Assembly: GCA_037447605.1 (NCBI GenBank)
Contig: CM074808.1
Span: 3,224,001-3,288,000, forward strand
Reading direction: 5' to 3'
DNA from: Zygnema circumcarinatum SAG 698-1b
Lineage: Eukaryota > Plantae > Zygnematophyceae
DNA length: 64,000 bases
Positions 10,176 through 54,600 of this stretch are shown here, piece after piece; the stretch's first letter is position 1; each line of letters opens with the position of its first letter. The notes below the pieces were generated by a model. The model saw only the letters and a program-made list of their open reading frames with translations. It was not told the origin of the DNA and ran no database searches. The position numbers were made by a program, and so were the translations under genes.

Positions 10176-11871
10176 TCAAGTACTGAGATGCTCCAACAGC
10201 GCCAGGGCACTTTCAATATCTTCAGGTCCTACAAACTCGTGTACTGCCACCTGCAGCTCAGTAGCACTGCCTGCCCGTCATTCTCACAGATCGCTCCAAT
10301 GCAAGCTCTACAACTGTCATGCTCTTCCCCGAAAACTAGACGCCAATACTTGATATTTTACGACGGTATCTTGTGAAAAGGGCACTTCCAAAAGCAGAGC
10401 AGTCGTTTAGGGCAATTTGATGCGCACCCATTGATCCGCTGTCATGTGGAGCTTAAGAGTGTCGCTTTTCTCGGCGCGCCGTGCTTTCTGACGACTTATA
10501 TTCTTCAACTTGGAATGCTCCAACGCAATCTGCAATACCATTCCCAACAACCACTCAATACTTTCACTGTCATCCTAATCTGCTACTGTAGGCAGCAAGA
10601 CGACACGTCACAGTATGTAGCAGCCGTTACAGCATGCATGCATGGCCTCAAATTCGCAACATTATCAGCCCCAGGGACAGGAATCGTGAGCTCAAACTTA
10701 CAGAGATTCGTTGATTTTTGTCAGAAACGTGAAAACAGACATTCTTGTCAGTGATGTACAAAGTGCCGGGGAAGCTCATCGGTAACTCAGGTGTGAAGCT
10801 GTTGTGAGTACAACGGAAAGTCTGTAACAACTTGCAGGGGAAGGCTGCAGAAATCGTAGCCGCAACAAAATGAGAATGGAGTAAGTGTACGGGCAAATTC
10901 ATATAGAGCACTCTGACAGACTCACTGTGGTCCAAATATGTCGTTCAAGACTGCGACCTCATAACGTTCAAGTTCCATATGCACAAACCCTTGGCACTGC
11001 AACACAAATGCAAGATGTTGCCTGTCACGAAAAGCGTCAGGTTAAGTTGCCCATTTTTTGTTATGCCTAATGGTACCTACCTTCTATAAGGCTCTCTTGT
11101 GCTGGGAGACCAAACAAGGCCTGCAAGTTAACCGACTTCTTGTCCAGAGGTGCCTCTACTCCTGTCTCTTCAGAACCCGAAATTTGCGGCACGAGTACAG
11201 CCTTTTCGTGATCCTGGTAGGCCTTCTCGCCCATATCAAAACTGCTCCACCAGCTGGAGAGTGTGCTACTAAGGCCTGTGAGCCCTGGCATCTGCAACGA
11301 CAGTCGCAGTCATCCATAAAATAAGCAGAGGCATCACGTAAATTCACAATTGCATTTTCAAACCGACCGCACTGGGACGTGCCAGTCCACCCGCTCCTGC
11401 CCTCCTTGTAAAACCAGTTTGCGACAACAGCGTCAAATTGCTCACCTTGCTACTTAGCTCCTGCACTGCGGCCGCAGCTTCCTTACTCGCAGTCGATGCT
11501 ATGTCCACCACATTCCTCCCAAGCTCCTGCACGTTGGAAGTCACCTGCTCAATGTCTTTCAAGGCGTCCTCCGGTGCCCACTCCATGGTCCCCACGTTCT
11601 GATCCATAACCATGAGCGACAACGGGTCATACGAGGGCAAACCGACCCCCTCATTCTGCGTACTTGCACTTTCAGAGGATTTCTCCGCCGCAGAATCCAC
11701 TTTCTTTCCGTCAAGAGAGGCGGACGCTGCGGAGGAAGCCCCGACTGTGTTAGGGGTAGCCGCAGCCAGATCATCGACGGCGATGGAGTCTGCTTTCTCA
11801 ACGATCACCGCCGGCCCCCCGAGCTCCGCCTCAGCAGGTGGGGAAGCCGCCATGGACTCTTGGCCCTCCAA
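10176..11871 (-). CDS. GRAM (PH-like) domain protein with acidic disordered N-terminus
   Basis: Spliced exons give ...VNLQALFGLPAQESLIE-AFPCKLLQTFRCTHNSFTPELPMSFPGTLYITDKNVCFHV-IALEHSKLKNISRQK...DQW-VAVHEFVGPEDIESALALLEHLST*. The FGLP..E.L...F.C.L...G.LYIT...VCF motif is typical of GRAM domains. Confidence 0.75.
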
Positions 11872-12530
11872 GAGCCCCTGCAGCTGCCACGCGGCAGCCT
11901 CAAATACCTGTCAGAATGCACATCAGCTGGCGGACATGGACATGACCTGCACAGAATTAGGGTTAGGGCTAAGCCGGCCGGCGGGGCGGGCGGGCAGAAG
12001 GACTTGGTCAGGGCGAGCACCTGAGCAGCCCATTTCCCTGCGTATTCTGGGGCTTACGTCACCGGGTTTTCCGGGCCCCTAAACGACAGAGCGCGCCCCA
12101 TGCATTCCGCGCAGGCTCACGCATATTCTGCGCCTGTTTTCACGATCCAATGACGTCAGCAAAACCTAAGTTGTTCACTCCGACAAACCGAGAAGCCGAG
12201 GGGGCGAGGGTCCCTTGGCGACCGTACGGTAGTCCCTCCGCAGTATGCATGCGAGCGGCCGCCAGTTCAACGGCGCGGGAGACAGGGCTTCACGCGATCA
12301 GCGTGCATATATGTGTGCATTTCTATGTCACAGTTTCCGATCTGTTCTGTGTTGTATTCTGAGCCCGTTGATCAACTTCCCTTCCATGGCTCGAGTGGCT
12401 TGTTTCCCATACCATCCCATAGTCCCATCCATCCATGCATGCATGTATGCAATCCATCGTACAATGGTGGGCTGCATTTTTTCAAACCCATTTCCGTTCC
12501 TGGCTGCGTGATCCATGGATGGTGCCATGA

Positions 12531-12655
12531 GCATGGCATGGCATGGCAGGGCATGGCATGGCATGGCATGGCACGGCATGGCATGGCAGGGCATGGCATG
12601 GCACGGCATGGCATGGCAGGGCATGGCATGGCATGACCTGGCATAGCATGGCACG
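12531..12655. repeat. (GGCAT)n pentanucleotide microsatellite with 30-bp higher-order unit
   Basis: gcatggcatg repeats with a recurring GCACGGCATGGCATGGCAGGGCATGGCATG unit. Confidence 0.95.
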
Positions 12656-12890
12656 CCCAAGTATTGTGCACGACTTCTTTGGCACAAAGTGCACAGCTAG
12701 CAGCCCCCCATGGTGCCCCACAGCGACTGACCATTGTCCGCTGCCCCACCAGGTGCCTGCCTGCCTGACTAATTGCCTGCCTCAGCCGTGCACCATTTAG
12801 CAGCACTGTTGGGCTCGTCCGGTACTTGGCATCTGGGTTGGGCCCCTTCTGACTCCCAAGTCCCAACTGCCAAAGCAAGAGGAAGGCTCA

Positions 12891-12913
12891 GGGTGGGTTT
12901 CCATCAGCCCGTT
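12891..12913 (+). repeat. Left TIR of Harbinger element
   Basis: Exact reverse complement of 18124-18146. Confidence 0.95.
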
Positions 12914-13077
12914 ACTCCGACGTGGCATCGTAATGGACGACGACCCATGGGTTCCAAGGGAGGCCGCTTTCCACCAACGCGGGCGCCGGCTATGGCCGCT
13001 ATAATGCCGAGGCAATCGCTCCTCAGGACGGTCCGAGGAAGGTGTAACGCCATTACGCATCATTCGTACCGCCACTG

Positions 13078-16000
13078 GCAAGAAGCAAGAAGCAAGAAGC
13101 AAGCAAGAAGCAAGAAGCCAGAAGCCAGAAGCAAGAGAAGCAAGAAGCAAGAAGCCAGAAGCAAGAAGCAAGAAGCAAGAAGCAAGAAGCAAGAAGCAAG
13201 AAGCAAGAAGCAAGAAGCAAGAAGCCAGAAGCAAGAAGCCAGAAGCCAGAAGCCAGAAGCCAGAAGCAAGAAGCAAGCAAGAAGCAAGAAGCAAGAAGCT
13301 AAGAAGCAAGAAGCAAGCATAAGAAGCAAGAAGCAAGAAGCCAAGAAGCAAGAAGCCAAGAAGCAAGAAGCTAAGAAGCAAGAAGCTAAGAAGCAAGAAG
13401 CAAGAAGCCAAGAAGCAAGAAGCCAAGAAGCAAGAAGCGAAGCAAGAAGCAAGAAGCCAAGAAGCAAGAAGCAAGCAAGAAGCAAGAAGCCAAGAAGCAA
13501 GAAGCAAGAAGCAAGAAGCAAGAAACAGAAGCAAGAAGCAAGAAGCGAAGCAAGAAGCAAGCATAAGAAGCAAGAAGCAAGAAGCTAAGAAGCAAGAAGC
13601 AGAAGCAAGAAGCAAGAAGCAAGAAGCCAAGAAGCAAGAAGCCAAGAAGCAAGAAGCCAAGAAGCAAGAAGCCAAGAAGCAAGAAGCAAGCATAAGAAGC
13701 AAGAAGCAAGCATAAGAAGCAAGAAGCAGAAGCAAAAGCAAAAGCAAAAGCAGAAGCAAGAAGCAGAAGCAAGAAGCAAGAAGCCAAGAAGCAAGAAGCC
13801 AAGAAGCAAGAAGCAAGAAGCAAGAAGCAGAAGCAAGAAGCAAGAAGCAAGAAGCAAGAAGCGAAGCAAGAAGCAAGAAGCGAAGCAAGAAGCAAGAAGC
13901 AAGAAGCAAGAAGCAAGAAGCGAAGCAAGAAGCAAGAAGCCAAGAAGCAAGAAGCCAAGAAGCAAGAAGCTAAGAAGCAAGAAGCAAGAAGCAAGAAGCA
14001 AGAAGCCAAGAAGCAAGAAGCCAAGAAGCAAGAAGCCAAGAAGCAAGAAGCGAAGCAAGAAGCAAGCATAAGAAGCAAGAAGCAAGAAGCAAGAAGCCAA
14101 GAAGCAAGAAGCTAAGAAGCAAGAAGCAGAAGCAAGAAGCAAGAAGCCAGAAGCAAGAAGCAAGAAGCAAGAAGCCAGCAGCAAGAAGCAAGAAGCAAGC
14201 AAGAAGCAAGAAGCCAAGAAGCAAGAAGCCAAGAAGCAAGAAGCCAAGAAGCAAGAAGCCAAGAAGCAAGAAGCAAGAAGCTAAGAAGCAAGAAGCAAGC
14301 AAGAAGCAAGAAACAAGAAGCAAGAAACACGAAGCAAGAAGCAAGAAGCAAGAAGCAAGAAGCAAGAACCAAGAAACAAGAAGCAAGAAGCAGGAAGCAA
14401 GAAGCAAGAAGCAAGAAGCAAGCAGCAAGAAGCAAGAAGCAAGAAGCAAGAAGCAAGAAGCAAGAAGCAAGAAGCAAGAAGCAAGAAGCAAGAAGCAAGA
14501 AGCAGAAGCAAGAAGCAAGAAGCAAGAAGCAAAAAGCAAGAAGCAGAAGCCAGAAGCAAGAAGCAAGCATAAGAAGCAAGAAGCAAGCAAGAAGCAAGAA
14601 GCGAAGCAAGAAGCAAGAAGCGAAGCAAGAAGCAAGAAGCAAGAAGCTAAGAAGCAAGAAGCAAGCATAAGAAGCAAGAAGCAAGCAAGAAGCAAGAAGC
14701 GAAGCAAGAAGCAAGAAGCCAAGAAGCAAGAAGCAAGAAGCTAAGAAGCAAGAAGCAAGAAGCCAAGAAGCAAGAAGCTAAGAAGCAAGAAGCAAAACAA
14801 GAAGCAAAAGCAAAAGCAAGAAGCAAGAAGCAAGAAGCCAAGAAGCAAGAAGCTAAGAAGCAAGAAGCAGAAGCAAGAAGCAAGAAGCCAAGAAGCAAGA
14901 AGCTAAGAAGCAAGAAGCAAGAAGAAGAAGCAAGAAGCAAGAAGCCAAGAAGCAAGAAGCAAGAAGCGAAGCAAGAAGCAAGCAAGAAGCAAGAAGCAAG
15001 AAGCTAAGAAGCAAGAAGCAAGAAGCTAAGAAGCAAGAAGCAAGAAGCAAGAAGCAAGAAACAGAAGCAAGAAGCAGAAGCAAGAAGCAAGAAGCAAGAA
15101 GCAAGAAGCAAGAAGCAAGAAGCAAGAAGCAAGAAGCAAGAAGCAAGAAGCGAAGCAAGAAGCAAGCATAAGAAGCAAGAAGCAAGCAAGAAGCAAGAAG
15201 CCAAGAAGCAAGAAGCCAAGAAGCAAGAAGCAAGAAGCCAAGAAGCAAGAAGCTAAGAAGCAAGAAGCAAGAAGCTAAGAAGCAAGAAGCAAGAAGCAAG
15301 AAGCCAAGAAGCAAGAAGCAAGAAGCCAAGAAGCAAGAAGCAAAACAAGAAGCAAGAAGCAAGAAGCCAAGAAGCAAGAAGCCAAGAAGCAAGAAGCCAA
15401 GAAGCAAGAAGCAAGCAGCAAGAAGCAAGAAGCAAGAAGCAAGTAGCAAGAAGCAAGAAGCAAGAAGCAAGAAGAAAGAAGCAAGAAGCAAGAAGCAAGA
15501 AGCAAGAAGCAAGAAGCAAGAAGCAAGAAGCAAGAAGCAAGAAGCAAGAAGCAAGAAACAAGAAGCAAAAAGCAAGAAGCAAGAAGCAAGAAGCAAGAAG
15601 CAAGAAGCAAGAAGCAAGAAGCAAGAAGCAAGAAGCAAGAAGCAAGAAGCAAGAAGCAAGAAGCAAGAAGCAAGAAGCAAGAAGCAAGAAGCAAGAAGCA
15701 AGAAACAAGAAGCAAGAAGCAAGAAGCAAGAAGCAAGAAGCAAGAAGCAAGAAGCAAGAAGCAAGAAGCAAGAAGCAAGAAGCAAGAAGCAAGAAGCAAA
15801 AAGCAAGAAGCAAGAAGCAAGAAGCAAGAAGCAAAAAGCAAGAAAGAAGCAAGAAGCAAGAAGCAAGAAACAAGAAGCAAGAAGCAAGAAGCAAGAAGCA
15901 AGAAGCAAGAAGAAGCAAGAAGCAAGAAGCAAGAAGCAAGAAGCAAGAAGCAAGAAGCAAGAAGCAAGAAGCAAGAAGCAAGAAGCAAGAAGCAAGAAGC

Positions 16001-16291
16001 AAGAAGCAAGAAGCAAGAAGCAAGAAGCAAGAAGCAAGAAGCAAGAAACAAGAAACAAGAAACAAGAAGCAAAAAGCAAGAAGCAAGAAGCAAGCAGCAA
16101 GAAGCAAGAAGCAAGAAGCAAGAAGCAAGAAGCAAGAAGCAAGAAGCAAAAAGCAAAAAGCAAGAAGCAAGAAGCAAGAAGCAAGAAGCAAAAAGCAAAA
16201 AGCAAAAAGCAAAAAGCAAGAAGCAAAAAGCAAGAAGCAAGAAGCAAAAAGCAAGAAGCAAGAAGCAAGCAGCAAGCAGCAAGCAGCAAAA
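13078..16291. repeat. ~3.2-kb (AAGCAAG)n heptamer satellite with variant units
   Basis: Continuous array of AAGCAAG with AAGCCAAG, AAGCTAAG, AAGCG, AAGCATAAG, AAGCAG and AAACAAG variants. Nearly pure heptamer at ~15480-16040. The + strand is almost T-free. Confidence 0.98.
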
Positions 16292-16368
16292 GACGATGAC
16301 ATAGCCTCTTAACAAAAAAGAGAGAATTCAACCAAAAGAGAAGAGAGAATAAAAGACAGCCGTATGTA

Positions 16369-17761
16369 TCACATGTCTTTTTCACAACTTCCACCACAAC
16401 AATAATGTTTAATGCTCTTCAGCAGGGCCGTACTGTCTAAACAACTTTTCAGCAAGTGCCATCCGCAACACCGCCCCGTCCACATCATCTTCAACCATAT
16501 GTGCATCCCTATCCGCAACACCGCCCCGTCCACATCATCTTCAACCATATGTGCATCCCTATACTCATTTTCTCTACCGCTCATTGCAATTTCAATTTCC
16601 TCATCACCAATGTCCTCTACCCTTTCATGTGTGAGCAAAAAAATGTGTAAAGTACATGCTGTTATAGAACTATCAATAAGATCTTGCGGGTCAGTCATCT
16701 GCTGTTTGGAATCTAAGATAACCCATCGTTTTTTTAAAATTCTATAGCATCTTTCGATACACATGCAAGCTTTGCTATGATAAACATTAAATGACTGTTG
16801 TGGCTCCATACTGGAGTTGCCTACAAAAAGCCTTAACAAGCTTTTTTTCAAAGGGTAACCTGCATCCCCAATGATGTACGGTGAGATACTCATGCCTTCT
16901 ACTTCCTTCGCATTTCCTTCTAAGCCTCCCCCGAACGTGATTGCTCTGCCAATTCCTGAGTTTACAAATACTCGAGCCAATTCCTGAGTTTACAAACACT
17001 CGAGCATCATGAACTGATCCTTCTAACCTGAACATCTAATATACGGGTATCAAGAGCCACCACAGTTTGCATAACCAACGCTATAATTGTGGTTCCTATT
17101 GTACCAATCTTTATTGCGTAAACCCGAACCTAAAGTAATGTTTATATGAGTTGCGTCAATGGCTCCATAACAATTTATAAACCCTGTATGCTCCTCAAAT
17201 TGTCTTGACACATTCTCAAACTGTTCCGCACTTGGCCAACCCATATATTGAGGAGTTAAAATAGATCTTACGCTTACAGAAAGCTGAGTGCTTTCACCGG
17301 ACAGTCAACACTTACTCCAAAAACTGCACTGACAACAGATGAACGTACTCCTTGGGCTAACCTATATAAAGACATCTCTATCTGCCTACGTATTTCTAAG
17401 GCGACGGTTTGGAATGGTAAGGAAAACTGTGGGAGGATTTGTTTTTAACTCTTCACCTAACTCATCAGTCAACATAGAGACAAGCCCCTTGGAAAGTCTA
17501 AACTTTTCTATATATTACTCACTTGTTATGTCCTCGATCAGAAACAATGAAAAATGCGGTCTCCATAATACGCATACTAATACGTCTTTGACGGACATTC
17601 CATAAATACTTTCTAAACTGAATAAGTAACTGCCGCTTTCGTGAGCTCCTCCTTTGTAGAAATACTTCAAGTAATAATATATTTAACATTATTGCATTTT
17701 CTTCTTCATTGATCAGCATGTTCAAGAGCCCAAAAAACAATAGGAGGGCTCTTCGATCCAT
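16369..17761 (-). pseudogene. Disrupted PIF/Harbinger (HARBI1-like, DDE_Tnp_4) transposase
   Basis: Fragments in several frames: FRLSKGLVSMLTDEL (HTH region), QYMGWPS, FINCYGAIDATHI, DWYNRNHNYS, GSVHDARVFVNS, YIIGDAGYPL, FNVYHSKACMCIERCYRILKKRW. Internal stops, frameshifts and tandem duplications of 28 bp (16948-17003) and 50 bp (16461-16560). Confidence 0.9.
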
Positions 17762-18123
17762 ACTGTTGCCGGAGAGTGTTGCTAGTACTACCAAACCTGG
17801 GAGAAGACAACGCAGAAAGGGAACGGAAGCCTCCGGCCGTGGAATTGCGAGGCAAACGCCGCGAATGGCGTTGCCGCGAAAGGTAAGGAAGTGGGGAAGA
17901 GAAGGTAGGGGGGAGGTGGCGGCTGTAGTGGCGGCGTCCGTCGCCTCCTGCAAACCCTAAAAAATTGTCGACGGTGACGCGCGTACGGTAACCGCGGTGG
18001 GCCACGGCGGACGCTTCAAATCGTGCACGTGGCGATCGCTGATTGGAAAACGGCGTTTTGATGGAACTCGTCGTTTTATCTGCAAAACGGCGTCCTACGT
18101 GGCCCGTAACGAGCTCGTTACGA

Positions 18124-18146
18124 AACGGGCTGATGGAAACCCACCC
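18124..18146 (-). repeat. Right TIR of Harbinger element
   Basis: Exact reverse complement of 12891-12913, followed by TSD TCA. Confidence 0.95.
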
Positions 18147-19394
18147 TCAGACTTGCAGGGGGAGGGGGGCGGGGGTCTCACAGACCAATCCCAAGTCCAG
18201 TTCACGCCAGCATGAGGTTCAACAAGGGGGGGGACTGTGTGGATTGATCATTGGTAAGGTGCCATGTGGATGACACGTGGTGTTTTTTCGTTGGCGGTAG
18301 CTGCGCAAAGTTCGGCGCCCCTCCGGCTTTCATTGGCCTTCCAACTGGCGTGCACGTGCGGGCGGTTGAAGCTCAGCAGTTGGTGGTTGAAAAACGTCGT
18401 TGGAAAACGCTCCGCAATCTCCGGAGCTTCAACCGGTTGAAAGAAAGTTCAACCACGCCAACAAAACTGACCTGTGGACAGGTTAGGACACAGGATTGCC
18501 AACCATTGGATTGGCCAACCATTGGACAGCCGTTGAACCATTCATTAGAAAAAGTTGCAGCCGTAGGTCTAAAAATTCAAGACAAACGTAATTCATTCCT
18601 GATGTCTCTCGTTCAATTGAACGCAGCAAAAATGAACAATTTAAAATACCAAAGGTGTCCATAGACCGCGGTGGTACGTTACAAGCAAACCCCGGACCAC
18701 TTCTAAGTCTGACACGCCCTATTTGGGGGTTTCAAATCGGAGAAAAACGGCGCTGAAATGGCCGTCTTTGTGCTGACTCGACTGTCACAATCCGCTGAAT
18801 CTAGACCGGATGTGTCGGAATACTCATTGCCTGTCGCACTGAAAACCGCACTTTCGACTCTGATGGATATTTAAGATTGACACCCCCTATTGGAGTCAAC
18901 TTTTTTTGAACCAGTGTCTGTCAAATAACAGAGGCTCGCATTTGCATTTTTTGACGTAAAATTAAAAAGATTTTCAGCATCGTCAGTTTTGAGAACTATA
19001 CTTCTGACAAAATTCACCAGAGGTAAGGAAGGCTTCTACAAAAATAACTCAGCCTACAAACAGCGCCACACGGTGGTAATGAATTTCAGAGTTCCATGTG
19101 TGGCTGCTTCCATGGTCGGTCAACCCCGGTGGTCGTGGGGCGAGTGAACCCCCCCCCTCCTTTATTCCTGCAAGAGAAAAGCGGCAGACTTCACTACTTT
19201 CTCATAGCCTATGTAGAGTGGGCTTGAACCCTGAACTCTTGAAAGCGCTTGTAGATAAAAGAGAATTTGAATCTCGATTTTGGAAGAGGGACATAAAAGG
19301 AATTCACATAGAGTCATTAGTGTTGCAAATGGATGCGTCTGATATAGGCCAAGGCTCTTACCCTGACATAGAACTGTACCCTACGACTGGCTAA

Positions 19395-24310
<4,916 letters not shown>

Positions 24311-34704: not shown

Positions 34705-36050
34705 GAGAGAGATAGAGAGAGGACTTTAGTGTATTAACAGCTTGGAGATACTGTAAGGTAGTTGGTGGGAGAGCTGAGGACTGATTCAGGCACTTGATAT
34801 CGCAGTGAATTCGGAGGGAGAGAGAGAAGTGTATTTGGCGGACGCCATAGTTTTTGCGGTGGGCGTCCAGGCCATGCAGGTGCGAAAATTAAAGTTTGAA
34901 TATCCCTTTAAGGGGCTTCTTATACTCTCTCCTCACTGTCAAGATTCTGACTTGGACCCTTTCTTTAACGCAGATCTGATGATACCTACATCCTACTCCT
35001 TACTCCCTCCCTTCCTTTTCGCAATCTATGGTGCAGAAAATAGTGGCAGCATCTCCCGGCCTTTCGGCTCATGCAGATTTTTGCGCCTTCGCAAACCTTG
35101 GAGGGATCGATGTGCTTGCAGTGCGGCTTTGGCTCGATCGTCACGTCACGCTTCTGAATCCGTCCAACGTATTGGCAGGCTTTGAGCCGACAAGTGGCGC
35201 AACCCTATTCGACCTGAATGCGCTTCAGGTATTTTTAGGGTTTTTTGGGTTTTTAGGGTATTAGGGTTTTAGGGTTTTTAGGGTTTTTAGGGTTTTTAGG
35301 GGTATGAGTTTTCGTTCTCATTGAAGTGTTCGCCAGTTTTCTGGTGGGCTTCATTTGGAGAGTATCCGAGAACAGCACTGGTTTTACCGCCGGTCTGTGA
35401 AGAGTATCCAGAAGTGGTGCTGGTGACAGGATGAATACCGAAACGAGGAGGGCAGTGTGGTGGAGGTGGATGTTTACCATGCCAATCAATTATTGCCGCT
35501 CTCAGATGAAGATATCATCTCTGCTGTAAGCCGCCTCTCTCTCTCTCTCTCTCCCCCTAACACTCTCTCCCCCCCCCCCCCCNNNNNNNNNNCCCCCCCC
35601 CCCCCAAACCAGCCCTCCCAACCGTCCTCCCGCCTCCCCCCATTGCAGATCCAAAATCGGTATCTCGCCAGGTGCGAGCCCGCCTTCGCTTCCGCCCAAG
35701 TCCTCGACAGCAGTGTACTCCGTTTCCGCGGAGCCGTAACTCTCTTCGGCGCAGGGTCCCACCAGCACATGCCCTCCACCTCCACCTCCCTCCCCAACGC
35801 CTTCATGGCGGGCGACTGCCTCAAGCAGGGCCCGGGCAGCCATGGCGCGCGGGGCCTCTCCCAGGAGAAGGCATACGTCACGGGCCTGCAGGCTGCCGCC
35901 GCGGCCGCCCAATGGTTGGGGCTGGAGGGGGGCCATGGGGGGGTGCTGCCGGTGGAGGGGGACGAGGGGCACATCGCGGCAGGGAGGGCAATCGTGGGGG
36001 GGGTTAGGGGGGTTCTGAAGGGGATGGGTGTTAAGCGGGTGTTTCTTTGA
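32324..36050 (+). CDS. Plastid FAD-dependent amine-oxidase-family oxidoreductase (PDS/ZDS-related, cyanobacterial type)
   Basis: Transit peptide, Rossmann KKVVVVGGGWAGLGAAHQL...GGL, GIKGFWWQYHNI, RLPTPLG, SARELFRRAGVSARLYREFLEPILLVTLFAPGE, LAHQADFDVRWCKG, ADAIVFAVG, FMAGD...GLSQEKAYVTGLQAA. Confidence 0.85.
35232..35302 (+). repeat. Intronic telomere-like (T4-5AGGG)n array
   Basis: TTTTTAGGG TTTTTTGGG TTTTTAGGG TATTAGGG TTTTAGGG TTTTTAGGG TTTTTAGGG TTTTTAGGGG, directly after a 5' splice site. Confidence 0.85.
35583..35592. other. Assembly gap (10 N) inside an intronic poly-C run
   Basis: N run flanked by C homopolymers. Confidence 0.95.
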
Positions 36051-40101: not shown

Positions 40102-42840
40102 AGCTTCAAAAACAACGCTCAAGCTCTCTGCCCTCACAACGGACTGAACTCTTATTTCCAACTCCCTTAGGAACCCGAAATTCGCAAATCCAACAATCCT
40201 CGAGCAACATAGACCTAAACTAGCCTGAGAAACCTGAAACCTTTGATAAACCCCACCTTGCGACCAATGAGACGGGAGAAAGCGCGCGTTCCCTCTCCCC
40301 CGCAGGCAGTTGCGGGCACCACAACACAGTCCACATCATGTGCCCAAATGGCTCCACCTCCCCTCCTCCCACTTCCTCCCTCCTCTCTCTCTATGAATTG
40401 GGGGGCCCGGCTGAGCCCCGCCAAAATGCAGGGAAGGAAAGTGTGGCCTATCTGCAGCCCCCCACCGATTACAAGAGTTCAGAGTTTGAACGTCTGCCGA
40501 TAGAGATTCAGTTTTTGAGCACTTCAGGTTCGCTCTTGTATTTGAGAGAGGGTCAGAATTCGATTGAGTTTCAGAGGCTTCCAGGTAAACAGGACCTTTA
40601 AGAGGGTTCACTTCCAATAAACCACGGTTTGATATTTGCAAACTTCGCCCTGTGGAGAACAATAGCAATAAGGACGTTTTTGCTTTGGATTTAAACTTTT
40701 AATAAGAACCACTGGCCATCCTATTGGGCACTCAACTGCGATATATCACAGCGAGATAAAACCTGGGAAAGCAGTTCGCAACTCACAAAAAATCCACTTC
40801 AGGAGTCCTAGGCTTGCTTTGGAATTTTTAACAATCTCAAGTTATTTGCAATCATCGAGGTGTTCGCAGGGACTTTAAGACTCTCAACTTTGTTCGGCTT
40901 TAGAATGTCAAGTCCTTCTCCAAATACTAAGTGCAACGACCTGGAGGGGGGGTGGAGGAGGGAGGGGGAAGGAGGGAAAGAGAGAGAGAGAGAGAGGTGC
41001 GAAACCTCTTCTGCAGCAGAGCGAGGGGATATGGAAGGGTCAAATGGAATCGGAGCAAGAGCGGGAGCGTGGGCACATGGAACACGGAGACTCTCGACCA
41101 CTGCGTGGCTGATCACAGCCTCCACTCCCGAAAGCGCGTCCACGCCCTGCTCGCCTTCCCCCCTCCCGCCTCCCCACTCTCAGTACAACCTCTCCATATG
41201 CTTCTCCTTTCCTAATTCTAACACCCTTAATCAGAAACACTTCTGCTCTCACCTCTCTCTCTCTCTCTCTCTCTCTCTCTTCACTCCCTCTTTTATCCCA
41301 CTCGTCCTCGCTCCCCCCTCACCCCTCCCCCTCCCCCCTCCCCCTCCCCCTCCCCCTCCCCCTCCCCCTCCCCCTCCCCCCTCCCCCTCCCCCTCCCCCT
41401 CCCCCTCCCCCCTCCCCCTCCCCCCTCCCCCGCTCCCCCTCTCCCCCTCTCCCCCATCCCCCTCCCCCTCTCCCCCTCCCCCGTCCCCCTCCCTCACCTG
41501 GCCCTGCCTGTACTGTTCAATGTCTTGGAGGTCGTCGTCGGGGAAGCGCGCCACGACGCCCAGCGCCTCCGCGCCCTCGCGGAGGAGTCCCTCCGCCGCG
41601 CGAAGGAGCGAGTCTCTGCGCGCGACCCGCCCCGTGGAGGCGCCCGTGGAGGGGTCCAACCACTTGGACACCTGCACTCCAATAAGGCCTCTCAGCCATG
41701 GCGACTGTCCCTCCCTTCTCTCCTACTTTCTCTCTCACTCTCGTCAAGTCGCCCCACCTTTTCAGCAGTCGTTTAGCAGTGGTCGGTTTGGGAATGGAGT
41801 GGAAAAGCGAACCTCGAGAGGGGTGTCTGTGAGAGTGTAGGTGATAAGGGGGAGGCCCAGCGTGGCTCTCGCAGCATCTACTGCTTGAAGGTGCCGCTGC
41901 AAAAGCTCCTCCTCTATGGCACAGTCAAACACAAGGCCGACCTGCAGTGCCAAACACAGCTCACAGTTAACAACGACTTTCTTTCGTTCGTTTTGTCATC
42001 GTCAAAACCAACTTGAAGGCCTTCACACCTCCCTAGGTGAAGCTCCGGTTCGAACTCGGGTATTTTATTACAATGTCGGTTGAAGTTTGTCATAGATGGA
42101 CAAAATTGGACAGGTAACATGATGATATTGATGATGATGATGATGATGATGTTAAAGAGGTGATGCAGAACATACCCTATTTTGATGCACAGGCTGCAAA
42201 CCCCAAATTCCTTCCGCAAACCTGTCGAGGCCATAGCCCTCCACATACAGCGCGTTCGACATGGGCCAATACATCATGGCGCCGTTCAGCACCTGCTTCC
42301 CCCCGCTTCCGTACAACATGACGAAACCCTAAAACCGCAACCCTCATCCCTGAACCCTGAAAACCCTGTTTCCCTAAAACATCCTCCTGTACACGCACAA
42401 CCCGGCCGCTCTGTCCTGAACCCCGGGCGCACATTAGGGTGAGTGATGAGACAGTCGGCTGTAGCCGCCATGGCGCGCGCTACAGGCAGCGCATCCCCTG
42501 CAAAGCCTCCAATGGCTGCGCCCACACCCGTGGGCACTATCAGCACCGCCGTGTACGGACGCTGCCCCAGCTGAACCCCGCCGCCCCCCGCGCAGGTCGA
42601 GGGTTTAGCGAGGCTTAGGGCTTTCGAGGGTTTGGTCTTTGAGGGCTTTAGGGTTTGCAGGGAGGGAGGGGCTGGCGGCGCCCCCACCTGTTCTGCGGAC
42701 ACGTGGAGGCTCCTGCTACGCCGCCGCCGGGTTTCTGGACACGTGGTGATCTGTGGCGGTTGCTGCGACCGTCCGGAGAGGCGCAGGGGAGGCCCCGAGA
42801 ACGCGCCACGTGGCAGCAGCGCGGCTCCCGGCGAGGCCAT
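39531..42840 (-). CDS. DUF3326 family protein (plastid-targeted, cyanobacterial homologues)
   Basis: RPYTAVLIVPTGVGAAIGGFAGDALP...LITHPNVLNGAMMYWP...YVEGYGLDRF...NRVGLVFDCAIE...GVDALSGVEAVISHAVV...CAHAPAL...SPRSAAEE...VDCVVVPATACGG...IAVEEN...EALGVMAAHKAGVNP. Confidence 0.9.
40041..40098. repeat. (CT)n intronic microsatellite
   Basis: Direct sequence observation. Confidence 0.95.
41311..41495. repeat. (CCCCCT)n-like tract in a DUF3326 intron, (GGGGGA)n on the sense strand
   Basis: Degenerate hexamer array just after the 5' splice site at ~41497. Confidence 0.9.
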
Positions 42841-44469: not shown

Positions 44470-44708
44470 CGACAGGCAGACAGACAGGCAGACAGACGGA
44501 CAGACAGACAGACAGATAGACAGTCAAACAGGCAGACAGACAAACAGGCAGTCAGACATACAGACAGTCAAACAGGTAGACAAACAAACAGGCGGATAGA
44601 CAGGCCGAGACAGGCGGGCAGAGACAAGCAGACAGACAGATAAACAGGCGTCATGCAGACAGACAGGCAGAGACAGGCAAGCAGGGACAGGCAGACAGAC
44701 AGACAGAC
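44470..44708. repeat. (CAGA)n degenerate tetranucleotide repeat, followed by (GGAG)n at ~44815-44860
   Basis: Direct sequence observation. Confidence 0.9.
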
Positions 44709-51634: not shown

Positions 51635-54600
51635 TTAGCTCCGACTTCTGCAGCACTCGACAGAAGGAACCGTTCAGTCACGTGTGCTTCAAGGAAGCCA
51701 ACAAAACTGCCACGAAAACATCTTAACAACTTAAATTTCTGCTTTTTTGTTAGTTCCTTTCTTTTGGGCGTTTCTTGCTAGTTTTGGAGGATTAAAAGCA
51801 TACGCCCAACACCCTGTTTTAGATTTGGCTCGTACTTCAGCAATCGTCAACCCTAAAACTGACAGACAAGACGTGGTGCGGAAACAAATTTCCTTCCAAA
51901 AAACGACATATTTCACTGGAAAAGCAAGATAGGCGATGAACCATAAGTTGACGCACCTGTGCCCTCCACTGCGCGGTGAAGGAGAGTGGGAGGTCTCTCT
52001 GCGAGAGGATCGGCTCCGCGTCTTCTCGGGAGACCTGCGTTTGGCAGAACTAGAGACGTTAGCAGACGCAGGATTTGCAGCGTTTAGGGTTTTCTGCTTC
52101 AGAATTCTTCCAACCTGTTCCTAGTTTTCAGATTGAAATAACCTTACCTCGAAAAGGAGCGTGAATAGCGTCTCTTTATGGGACTCCGACTCCGGCTTCT
52201 GCTTCGTCTGTCAGAGTACCTGCATGGGGAAGAGTAGAGCAGATGGGTCATACCATGCAGGCCCCACTCCTGAAAAGGAGACATCCTAAGAAGCTTAGAA
52301 TACCAAAGAAAAAGCAAGTGCTTGTCCTGTCCCGCCCTTACTTGGGAGAGCGGCTACGACTTCGGCTTCGGCTCCGATACTGCGCTTGAGCTCTCGTAGC
52401 AGCAGCCCTTTCCCGCATCTGCTTTTCTACTTCAGATTTTTTGGCTATCTCTGCTGCTGAATCCTTCTTGACTGCAGGGGAAAGCCAACCAAATGTTCAA
52501 ACTTCAGGAGTAGACATCAGCCTTTTATTGCGCATGATTGTTCGGCATCCTCACCGCATGCATCAGTGGAAAGGAGCACAGCAGAAACTTGTGGCAATAC
52601 GGATAGAAAGTAGGAGATGGATTTAACAAAAACACTAGACGCACATCAGGTTAAGGATTTCTGGCTTTGTTAACCCACTTTGCTTTGTCAGCTGTTTGCT
52701 CATTATCCGCTTTAGCCTCTCTTGAGGTGTCTCTTTCTTCTCTCCTTTACTTGCAGCCGAAACTGACTTACTCAGCTTCGCCAACGCAGCGGTTGAACTG
52801 CAAAACCCAGCAAGGTAGCCTCCGTTAGATAAGAAAGATAAGAAAAAACGGGAAAGGGCGGGGGGGGGGGGGGGGGGGGGGGGGNNNNNNNNNNGGGGGG
52901 GGGGGGGGGGGGGGGAAGGGTGATAATGTCAGTGACGCAATTCATGCAACCCCTGAAAACTACTACCCCCTTGGCCTCCATCTTGCTTCCCCTTCGGCTT
53001 TCCTTCCACCCCTTCATACAAGTGCCCTCTTAGCGCAGACTTGCCTGCCAGTGCTCTGAGGCTTGGCCTCCCACATGCGTCTCTCTCTCTCTCTCTCTGC
53101 TGTGGTAGGGAGGACTGCTGCAGGGCCTGCAGACGCCGCAGGGTCACCTCGCAGGGCCTCCAGGATGGGGCCCTGCCCGGGGGGGGGGCTGCTCGCACCA
53201 AGGAGGAAGTCAGAGGGAGTGTGTCTTTCTCACATACAAAGACTGAGAATGCACATGATGGGAATTGGAAGTCAAGAGGGGGAGCGCACTGCACCCCTTT
53301 GAAGTAGGGAATCCCACAGAATGGGCAAGACTTAGCTTGAATGCTCGAATTGAAAAACCGTTAAAAATGAATTGAACCAACAACAAACCTTGGTAGGCGG
53401 GATAATCTAAGGCCCGGTAATGTTGTCACAGCATCCTAGGCAAGTTATCAGAAGCAAAATAAATTGTAACAGATGTCCTCCACCCAACTTAACAAGCTGC
53501 TAAGGTCCCTCACATGCCGTACGTCCCACAACATGAACACGCTCCCGTTGATGACATAACACAAACCTGTACAAGAATGATGTACAGGACCCTCCATACG
53601 TCCTATCACGACTTCCCTACCTGGGTTGTTTTTGGACATTCTATATGGTTTTCGGGGCTAGTAACGAGCCCAAAGTGGGCCCAACCTACCCAACACGAAC
53701 TGCGTCTCGGCCTCGGCAGCTAGTCACAGCAGCCCACCCTGATGCTGCGGAGCAGAGTATGAGCACAGAGGGCCGCACTTTTTTCCATCAGACAACCGTT
53801 GAGAGGGAAAGGAGGGGCCAGTGCTCCGACCGGGTTGTGGAGTTACGCTGAGGCGACGAGGGTGGAGTCATCCCACGAGCAGCGACAGGAGCCTTATCGC
53901 CTGCCACATCAAACTCGGTAATAAACTCTATCTTTGGAAGCGGCTTCTCTCGTTCTCTGCCTCTCTCCCGCTCCCTCTCATAGTCTCGCCGGCTGTCACG
54001 ATCACGGCTTCTCCACCGGCTCCGTGCAGGCGAGACCGAACGAGAACGTGAGCGGGGTCTGAAAGTGCAGAAAAGAGAGAGCGAGAGGGAGAGAGAGAGA
54101 GAGAGAGACAGGAGGAGAGATGTTGGAGGAGGATAGGGAAGGGTCGGCGTGGAAAGGCGATGGAATTGGAGTGTACTTGAAAGAGTAAAGAAAAATCTTC
54201 AGATTCTTTTAAATTCCAATGTTCACATGTACTAGAATCACTAAACTTGGTGTGCATACAGAACAGATTTACTTACCTTTGTGGGCGAGGATATGGTTCG
54301 TATGTCGGACTCCCTCGACGCTCCCTGAGAAGAAGAAAAAAAAATTCTTGAAGGAATCAGATTCGAAATTCTTAAGAGTTCCCGTTGCCCTTTTCAGCAG
54401 TGCTTCTCAGCTGCATGGTTATGAATGGTCCACAACACATTTCCATGAGTGAAAACAACAAACAGTTCCCACACCTGTGATGATCTGAAAATTTGCTGAT
54501 TGCCCTCATTGTCGCATCATAGTCTTTATCTTTGGCCTGCCGTGCAGCCCGTCGTCTCTCCTTTCTGCTCAATTTCCTCTGTTCAACAATTGTGACAAAA

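Follow-up and report, generated by a model that had tools for sequence, protein, structure and literature searches.

In Zygnema circumcarinatum SAG 698-1b a Harbinger-type element of 5.3 kb (contig CM074808.1, positions 12891-18146 of the window, by which we mean the whole 64-kb stretch of DNA analysed here) carries a long array of a seven-base repeat between its ends. Such an arrangement can be understood in two ways: either the array is cargo, which the element brings along and disperses through the genome, as the preliminary description of this locus had proposed, or it is the product of local events within one particular copy. The question raised by the locus is which of these two histories its sequence speaks for.

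Anatomy of the element and its insertion site

The element is bounded by terminal inverted repeats (TIRs) of 23 bp at 12891-12913 (+ strand) and 18124-18146 (- strand), which match each other at 23 of 23 positions. Exactly two copies of the 23-mer, with 0 mismatches, are present in the window, while shuffled sequences are expected to contain it 0 times, and the two arms diverge immediately inside, the complementarity being restricted to these 23 bp. The triplet TCA is read on both sides of the element (12888-12890 and 18147-18149) as a target-site duplication (TSD); the chance of such a 3-bp match is 1/64. Taken together, the matching TIRs and the TSD point to a single insertion event. The empty site rebuilt from this one insertion, AAGGC-TCA-GACTT, is palindromic around TCA at 10 of its 13 positions, and a search for palindromes at the target gave 31-nt arms at 94%. 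The neighbours of the insertion are a GRAM-domain gene and Sec23, and the element lies about 1 kb upstream of the former. The perfect ends, the intact duplication and the near-palindromic target thus stand as they had been described.

Between the TIRs, the 164 bp next to the left end (12914-13077) are non-coding: the ORFs there have no Pfam match, and no copy of the heptamer is present. This distance from the TIR to the array had been put at about 165 bp. The array itself follows at 13078-16289 (+ strand, 3,212 bp) and lies wholly within the TIRs, again in agreement with the preliminary description. It is separated by a 119-bp stretch (16290-16408, - strand) from the inferred original stop codon of the transposase (16409-16411), and the decayed transposase gene extends from there to 17761. 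The remaining 362 bp before the right TIR (17762-18123) comprise the right subterminal region together with the 5' region of the transposase and match no Pfam family. No Rfam family was found in 12000-19000.

The subterminal regions are rich in CpG. The GC content is 61% and the observed/expected CpG ratio 1.15 across 12891-13077, the left TIR included, and the corresponding values for 17762-18123 are 58% and 1.39; the ratio for the whole window is 0.68. An internal 8-mer resembling the TIR, TGATGGAA, is located in the right subterminal region at 18059-18066.

Just 164 bp of element sequence on the left of the array could be taken as a trace of a composite origin, a macro-transposon in which the ends of separate copies flank a pre-existing array and the segment was moved or fused by recombination. 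Alternative transposition with the ends of different copies is known in other cut-and-paste superfamilies and offers a precedent for it. However, one ordinary element would account for the matching 3-bp TSD and for the single coherent transposase beside the array, the parts of the element adjoin the array with no unique host-like sequence in between, and there are no other copies nearby; we regard a composite origin as barely credible.

The transposase and the superfamily

The ORF at 16369-16980 (- strand) matches the Pfam family DDE_Tnp_4 (PF13359) with E=4.2e-9 and 36.7 bits, which is above the gathering cut-off of 24.8 bits. In tblastn, distant Harbinger-type transposases of 340-611 aa cover 17565-16495, or about 350 residues, with E-values down to 5e-26, the best of them coming from a 454-aa relative. 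The pseudogene (16409-17761, - strand) has about 450 codons and no introns, and its catalytic motifs can still be read: D in GAIDATH, D in GSVHDARV and E in CIERCYRILKKRW. Its reading path runs through the frames 0/2/0/2/1/0 with at least six frameshifts, and at least one in-frame stop is found near 17517. Introns in place of frameshifts were considered and rejected, because the homology is unbroken across all frame changes. Two of the disruptions are frame-shifting tandem duplications: one of 28 bp at the second catalytic D motif (16948-17005; TRF, 2.1 copies, 96% matches), where the frame switches from 1 to 0, and one of 50 bp in the C-terminus (16461-16562; TRF, 2.0 copies, 100% matches). 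With at least seven disabling lesions the transposase gene is dead, as had been noticed before.

The features that define the PIF/Harbinger superfamily (PMC2836001) include a DDE transposase (DDE_Tnp_4 or Plant_tran), short TIRs and a 3-bp TSD, and these three are found here, with the TIRs identical over 23 of 23 bp and TCA on both sides. The Harbinger identity given in the preliminary description is therefore supported, and the element can be assigned to the PIF/Harbinger type as a non-autonomous member. With maize PIF, rice Ping/Pong/mPing and zebrafish Harbinger3_DR it shares a transposase of the DDE_Tnp_4 type in which D, D and E can be read, the short TIRs and the 3-bp TSD, and the 5.3 kb of its full length are typical for coding elements. 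The extended target is near-palindromic in the single insertion seen here. The element differs from these characterised members in its TSD, which is TTA or TAA there and TCA in the one insertion seen here, and in its dead transposase. Furthermore, they carry ORF1, a Myb-like gene, whereas neither this gene nor a remnant of it is present in the Zygnema element.

The ORFs of 12773-13090 and 17706-18273 gave no Myb/SANT signal in Pfam at E<=1; their sole match, to MRP-L27, is at chance level (E=0.067; 13.7 bits, with the cut-off at 25). The DNA of the element that belongs neither to the array nor to the transposase is limited to three stretches of 164 bp, 119 bp and 362 bp, and the earlier remark that no room is left for a second, Myb/SANT-like ORF is borne out. 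The accompanying statement that the array sits "in place of" that gene can probably be kept in a positional sense only: the array would occupy a place where ORF1 could have been. A degenerate copy can be expected to lack ORF1, and its absence still allows membership in PIF/Harbinger.

The combination of pristine ends and decayed interior had been read as a sign of recent mobilisation in trans. At the lesion density of the interior, the 52 bp of TIRs and TSDs would stay unchanged with P of about 0.1-0.25. The perfect ends are thus not statistically at odds with the interior, and the argument for mobilisation in trans is a weak one. The ends and the high subterminal CpG do fit a fairly recent insertion of a copy which was already dead and already bore an array.

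Structure and origin of the heptamer array

TRF finds one array of period 7, (GCAAGAA)n, and counts 461.6 copies in it at 89% matches and 7% indels; in length it exceeds all other tandem arrays of the window more than 13-fold. The label "satellite" that it had been given refers to a single visible locus, one array of 3.2 kb. A census and map of the units and the spacing of their variants revealed that the array is far from uniform. Its left two-thirds are heterogeneous, with higher-order blocks of a 15-mer and recurrences 501 bp apart, while a block of 700 bp at 15400-16100 is nearly pure: canonical units make up 87.5% of the purest 400-bp bin, compared to 56-66% in the left two-thirds. The variants GCAAAAA and GCAAGCA are found at the right edge. 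The nearly pure block next to a heterogeneous remainder suggests that at least part of the array expanded recently in place. On the other hand, 11% mismatches and 7% indels imply that the array is not all young, and part of it may predate the insertion.

As for the place where the array began, the 119 bp that separate the array from the transposase stop, on the downstream side of that stop, are T/C-rich on the sense strand of the transposase and run into CTTGCTG/CTTGCTT units, which makes them a plausible seed zone. Two other sources were considered. The TIR and the subterminal sequence were rejected as the origin of the heptamer, since no rotation of it on either strand is found in the element outside the array. 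The octamer AAGCAAGA in the host flank (12873-12880) was rejected as well: its position is outside the TIR, and with rotations of the 7-mer turning up once in about 560 bp of the window it is probably a coincidence.

Within 5.3 kb the element contains three independent products of tandem duplication, namely the 7-bp array, the doubled 28-bp segment and the doubled 50-bp segment, of which the last is young as judged from the 100% identity of its copies. The tandem duplications, the gradient of purity and the segmental duplications within the array are internal evidence, read from one locus, which leans towards growth in situ.

An array of 3.2 kb made of 7-bp units is difficult to assemble, and the assembly has two gaps of 10 N, at 35583-35592 and 52885-52894, both within homopolymer runs, so it can be asked whether the length or the placement of the array is an artefact of a collapsed, expanded or chimeric join. 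The element and its surroundings are free of Ns, though. The variants in the array are rich and non-periodic, unlike those of a pure collapsed repeat, and both unique junctions lead into halves of one element with matching TIRs and TSD. An artefact of this kind is in our opinion very improbable.

We consider it probable that the locus represents one dead PIF/Harbinger copy whose array grew locally and is not a captured satellite. A divergent cut-and-paste copy would have been inserted as a unit at a near-palindromic site of the CTCAG type, duplicating TCA, and the transposase gene would then have gathered its disabling lesions, at least seven in number. The array would be an internal micro- or minisatellite which began in the short T/C-rich tract just past the transposase stop and grew by replication slippage first and by unequal exchange of larger blocks later, either at the present locus or in the immediate lineage of the copy. 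A local proneness to tandem duplication may lie behind both this growth and the duplications of 28 bp and 50 bp in the transposase. Growth of short arrays lying inside transposons has been described as a route (reviewed in PMC12628747).

Relatives, other copies and the possibility of dispersal

In the 64-kb window there is no further copy of the TIR and no further Harbinger transposase, and nowhere outside 13078-16289 do two or more heptamer units follow one another. The exact TIR had 0 matches in the metagenome collection, and the papers that were searched do not mention the heptamer for any alga. Among the proteins, a homologue search with a 203-aa piece of the transposase returned nothing, and a search for related loci with a clean 156-aa piece returned one relative with 27% identity on a 1.9-kb contig. 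A search of 1.84 billion cluster representatives (about 15 billion proteins) gave 503 transposase matches, the best of which are 34-40% identical; the clusters looked up contain Logan, ENA and JGI fragments and one arthropod protein annotated as ALP1, a Harbinger-derived protein. No close family member was found in the protein collections. With the closest proteins only 25-40% identical, the transposase belongs to a divergent lineage. The 392-aa bHLH ORF of the window matches only one Logan protein, at 56%, and the proteins of the host therefore seem to be absent from these collections. Blank protein searches thus carry no information on the number of copies in the genome.

These data bear on the proposal that a non-autonomous Harbinger subfamily, which is mobilised in trans by an autonomous partner and spreads the heptamer, has the array as a constitutive part or as cargo. 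The proposal is consistent with an array enclosed entirely by perfect TIRs and an intact TSD, with a dead interior between intact ends and with subterminal CpG which is not depleted, and transposons that disperse arrays are known among Helitrons/Helentrons, MITEs and the foldback element Tetris (PMC12628747, PMC4079207). Against it stand the 64 kb without another copy of either TIR or array, the TIR missing from the metagenome collection, the contrast of ends and interior, which is not significant, and the signs of ongoing local expansion, namely the pure block and the duplications of 28 bp and 50 bp, all of them young. No autonomous partner is known either, the closest transposases among the 1.84 billion representatives being at most 40% identical. 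Moreover, small PIF/Harbinger elements are better at transposing than larger ones (PMC9921582), and a copy of 5.3 kb laden with repeats is therefore unlikely to be an efficient vehicle. We judge the cargo proposal to be unlikely on balance. The array may nevertheless have sat already in a parent element of the one copy that is visible.

More improbable still is the far-reaching version, in which a divergent PIF/Harbinger subfamily of streptophyte algae has a standing (GCAAGAA)n array, is mobilised in trans and seeds multi-kb arrays close to genes; nothing observed in the 64-kb window points to a spread of the array through the genome or to a seeding of heterochromatin or centromeres. If true, it would be the first dispersal of a simple-sequence array by Harbinger elements, and it would be found in algal relatives of land plants. 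Should the array prove to be family-wide, PIF/Harbinger would join the groups of transposons known to spread tandem repeats, and a traceable source of new arrays would be at hand in a streptophyte alga. As it stands, the locus is a routine case for annotation, a single Harbinger copy in decay in which a simple repeat has probably expanded locally, and both tandem arrays inside transposons and their transposon-driven spread have already been described for other superfamilies.

Comparison with other array-bearing and non-autonomous transposons

The central arrays of Helitrons/Helentrons, the Xenopus MITEs miDNA4 and Xstir and Tetris of Drosophila virilis resemble the Zygnema element in having a tandem array between conserved termini, and in all of them, as here, the copy number of the array has changed (PMC12628747, PMC4079207). 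Their arrays, however, are present in many copies and often occur free as well, whereas one copy is visible here. As a rule their monomers measure tens to hundreds of bp and are derived from the element, in contrast to the simple 7-bp unit of the Zygnema element, which has no counterpart in the rest of it. Pack-type transposons are likewise non-autonomous, with intact ends and an interior that is largely non-transposon DNA. The difference is that Pack-type transposons contain captured fragments of host genes, while the interior of the Zygnema element holds a simple repeat, which expansion is able to produce without any capture.

Structure of the element and its transposase

Within the 64-kb window, the 23 bases at 12891-12913 have a single second occurrence, 18124-18146, which matches them perfectly in reverse complement; shuffled sequence yields no match. 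The pairing of these terminal inverted repeats (TIRs) ends at 23 bases, with divergence immediately inward, and the triplet TCA lies directly outside both ends as target-site duplication (TSD). The preliminary description had reported perfect TIRs and a TCA TSD bracketing a dead transposase and a whole satellite array, a near-palindromic target and about 165 bp between left TIR and array; sequence match and direct reading confirm the ends, the target rebuilt for a single insertion, AAGGC-TCA-GACTT, scores 10/13 as a palindrome, and the distance measures 164 bp. The 5,256 bp bounded by these ends fall into five parts: a GC-rich left subterminal stretch (164 bp), the period-7 array (GCAAGAA)n at 13078-16289 (3,212 bp, 461.6 copies, 89% matches, 7% indels), a 119-bp stretch that is T/C-rich as read on the minus strand, the AT-rich (40% GC) remnant of a minus-strand transposase, which extends from its ATG (17761) to the inferred original stop (16409-16411), and a GC-rich right subterminal stretch (362 bp). 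Rfam gave no match across 12000-19000. The TIR core (TGATGGAA) is repeated internally at 18059-18066, 81 bp inward of the right end, and may be a subterminal binding-site repeat.

The minus-strand ORF at 16369-16980 matches Pfam DDE_Tnp_4 (E=4.2e-9, above the gathering score). When 1.84 billion cluster representatives were searched exhaustively with HMMER, the transposase being queried solely as stop-free pieces, 503 relatives were returned, one of which is annotated as ALP1, a Harbinger-derived protein; the best identity is only 34-40%, within a protein collection that apparently lacks the host's own proteins. When the longer relatives were compared with the window by tblastn, the element was the sole match (E down to 5e-26 over 17565-16495). 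With all relatives as queries, ungapped tblastn traced the reading frame along the minus strand through frame 0 (17530-17410), frame 2 (17430-17310), frame 0 (17310-17070), frame 2 (about 17100-17040), frame 1 (17040-16980) and frame 0 (16980 down to 16512). Introns at these changes were rejected because homology is unbroken over each of them; they are therefore frameshifts, two of which are accounted for by tandem duplications of 28 bp (x2.1, 16948-17005) and 50 bp (x2.0, 16461-16562, 100% identical). Together with an in-frame stop near 17517, the lesions of the dead transposase amount to at least six frameshifting indels and at least one stop, and the catalytic motifs GAIDATH, GSVHDARV and CIERCYRILKKRW are still legible.

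Characterised coding PIF/Harbinger elements carry ORF1 alongside the transposase gene and need both to transpose (PMC2836001). The claim that no room is left for the Myb/SANT-like ORF1 holds: beyond array and transposase there are just 164, 119 and 362 bp, and no Myb/SANT signal was found in ORFs of the subterminal regions and flanks. Since ORF1 is missing and the transposase is dead, this copy is doubly non-autonomous. Downstream of the transposase, in the position now taken by the array, ORF1 may once have been located, with no remnant there; that the array sits in place of the gene is a guess from position. The element shares transposase type, TSD length and TIRs with PIF/Harbinger, but its TSD is TCA instead of TTA or TAA and it is without ORF1. 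It is a degenerate member of the superfamily from a divergent lineage.

Structure of the heptamer array

The unit GCAAGAA makes up 295 of the 453 parsed units, followed by GCCAAGAA (35), GCTAAGAA (16), GCAAAAA (13), GCGAA (11), GCCAGAA (10) and GCATAAGAA (8). The distribution of these variants is not random. The left two-thirds of the array consist of 15-mer higher-order blocks, in which a canonical unit is joined to GCCAAGAA or GCTAAGAA; GCCAGAA clusters at the left edge, GCAAAAA and GCAAGCA at the right. Marker variants recur at exactly 501-bp spacing (14066/14567 and 14665/15166), which shows that blocks of about 500 bp were duplicated. Between 15400 and 16100 the array is nearly pure: canonical units reach 87.5% in the purest 400-bp bin, versus 56-66% in the left two-thirds. 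Block structure, 501-bp recurrences and the nearly pure stretch point to a history of slippage and unequal exchange, in which part of the array expanded recently at its present location.

The heptamer, in any rotation, is absent from the remainder of the element, and runs of two or more units occur nowhere else in the window. A unit in the host flank (AAGCAAGA, 12873-12880), 8 bp ahead of the left TSD, is probably a coincidence because the 7-mer turns up in one rotation or another about every 560 bp. Next in size among the window's tandem repeats come a C-rich, (CCCCCT)n-like array of 181 bp (41313-41493) and a 238-bp (GACA)n array (44471-44708), each more than 13 times shorter than the heptamer array.

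Origin of the array

The array probably arose by local growth within this copy, a reading that rests on internal evidence from one copy. Three separate tandem-duplication products lie in 5.3 kb of element, two of them young because they are perfect or nearly perfect; the array contains a young pure block; its monomer, a simple repeat, bears no relation to the element sequence, and the adjoining T/C-rich tract could be its seed; and nothing related to element or array was found in the surrounding 58 kb. Against local growth, subterminal CpG is undepleted (o/e 1.15-1.39 versus 0.68 for the whole window), and the older, heterogeneous part of the array could predate the insertion. The alternative, that the array is cargo carried family-wide by the element, we regard as rather unlikely. 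In the metagenome collection, as in all the DNA collections searched a set without the host, the exact TIR had no match, and the sole find of a protein-guided metagenome scan was a 27% relative.

One could argue, as the preliminary description did, that pristine ends with a decayed interior speak for recent mobilisation. This argument is weak: at the interior indel rate (6 indels in about 1,350 bp, 0.0044 per bp) and an assumed 5-10 substitutions per indel, about 1.4-2.5 changes are expected in the 52 bp of TIRs and TSDs, which would stay intact by chance with a probability of about 0.08-0.25. What that description observed is accurate and confirmed. Its interpretation is partly supported, and on internal evidence the proposed dispersal of a satellite, with possible seeding of heterochromatin, is the less likely reading.

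Tandem arrays within transposons, their expansion and the dispersal of satellite repeats by transposons have already been described, with Helitron/Helentron elements, Xenopus MITEs and the foldback element Tetris as examples (PMC12628747; PMC4079207). In rice Ping/Pong, small derivatives transpose better than larger elements (PMC9921582). Our literature search found no mention of a (GCAAGAA)n heptamer in an alga. The locus is nothing out of the ordinary: a dead Harbinger copy in which a simple repeat has probably expanded internally.

Genomic surroundings

The element sits between two minus-strand genes, a GRAM-domain gene (exons 10648-10935 and 11344-11871; weak Pfam match, E=5e-4), whose putative ATG lies some 1 kb away from the element's left end, and Sec23 (E about 1e-11 for its trunk and beta-sandwich domains, at 21218-23983). 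A (CATGG)25 pentamer array occupies 12526-12653, about 240 bp beyond the left end of the element, where the GRAM-domain gene has its putative promoter region. The only assembly gaps in the window are two 10-N runs (35583-35592 and 52885-52894), far from the element; they sit within long stretches of poly-C and poly-G, and the assembly therefore has gaps at homopolymers. At 35232-35312 there is an interstitial telomere-like motif, TTTTTAGGG, in about 8 copies, far from any visible contig end.
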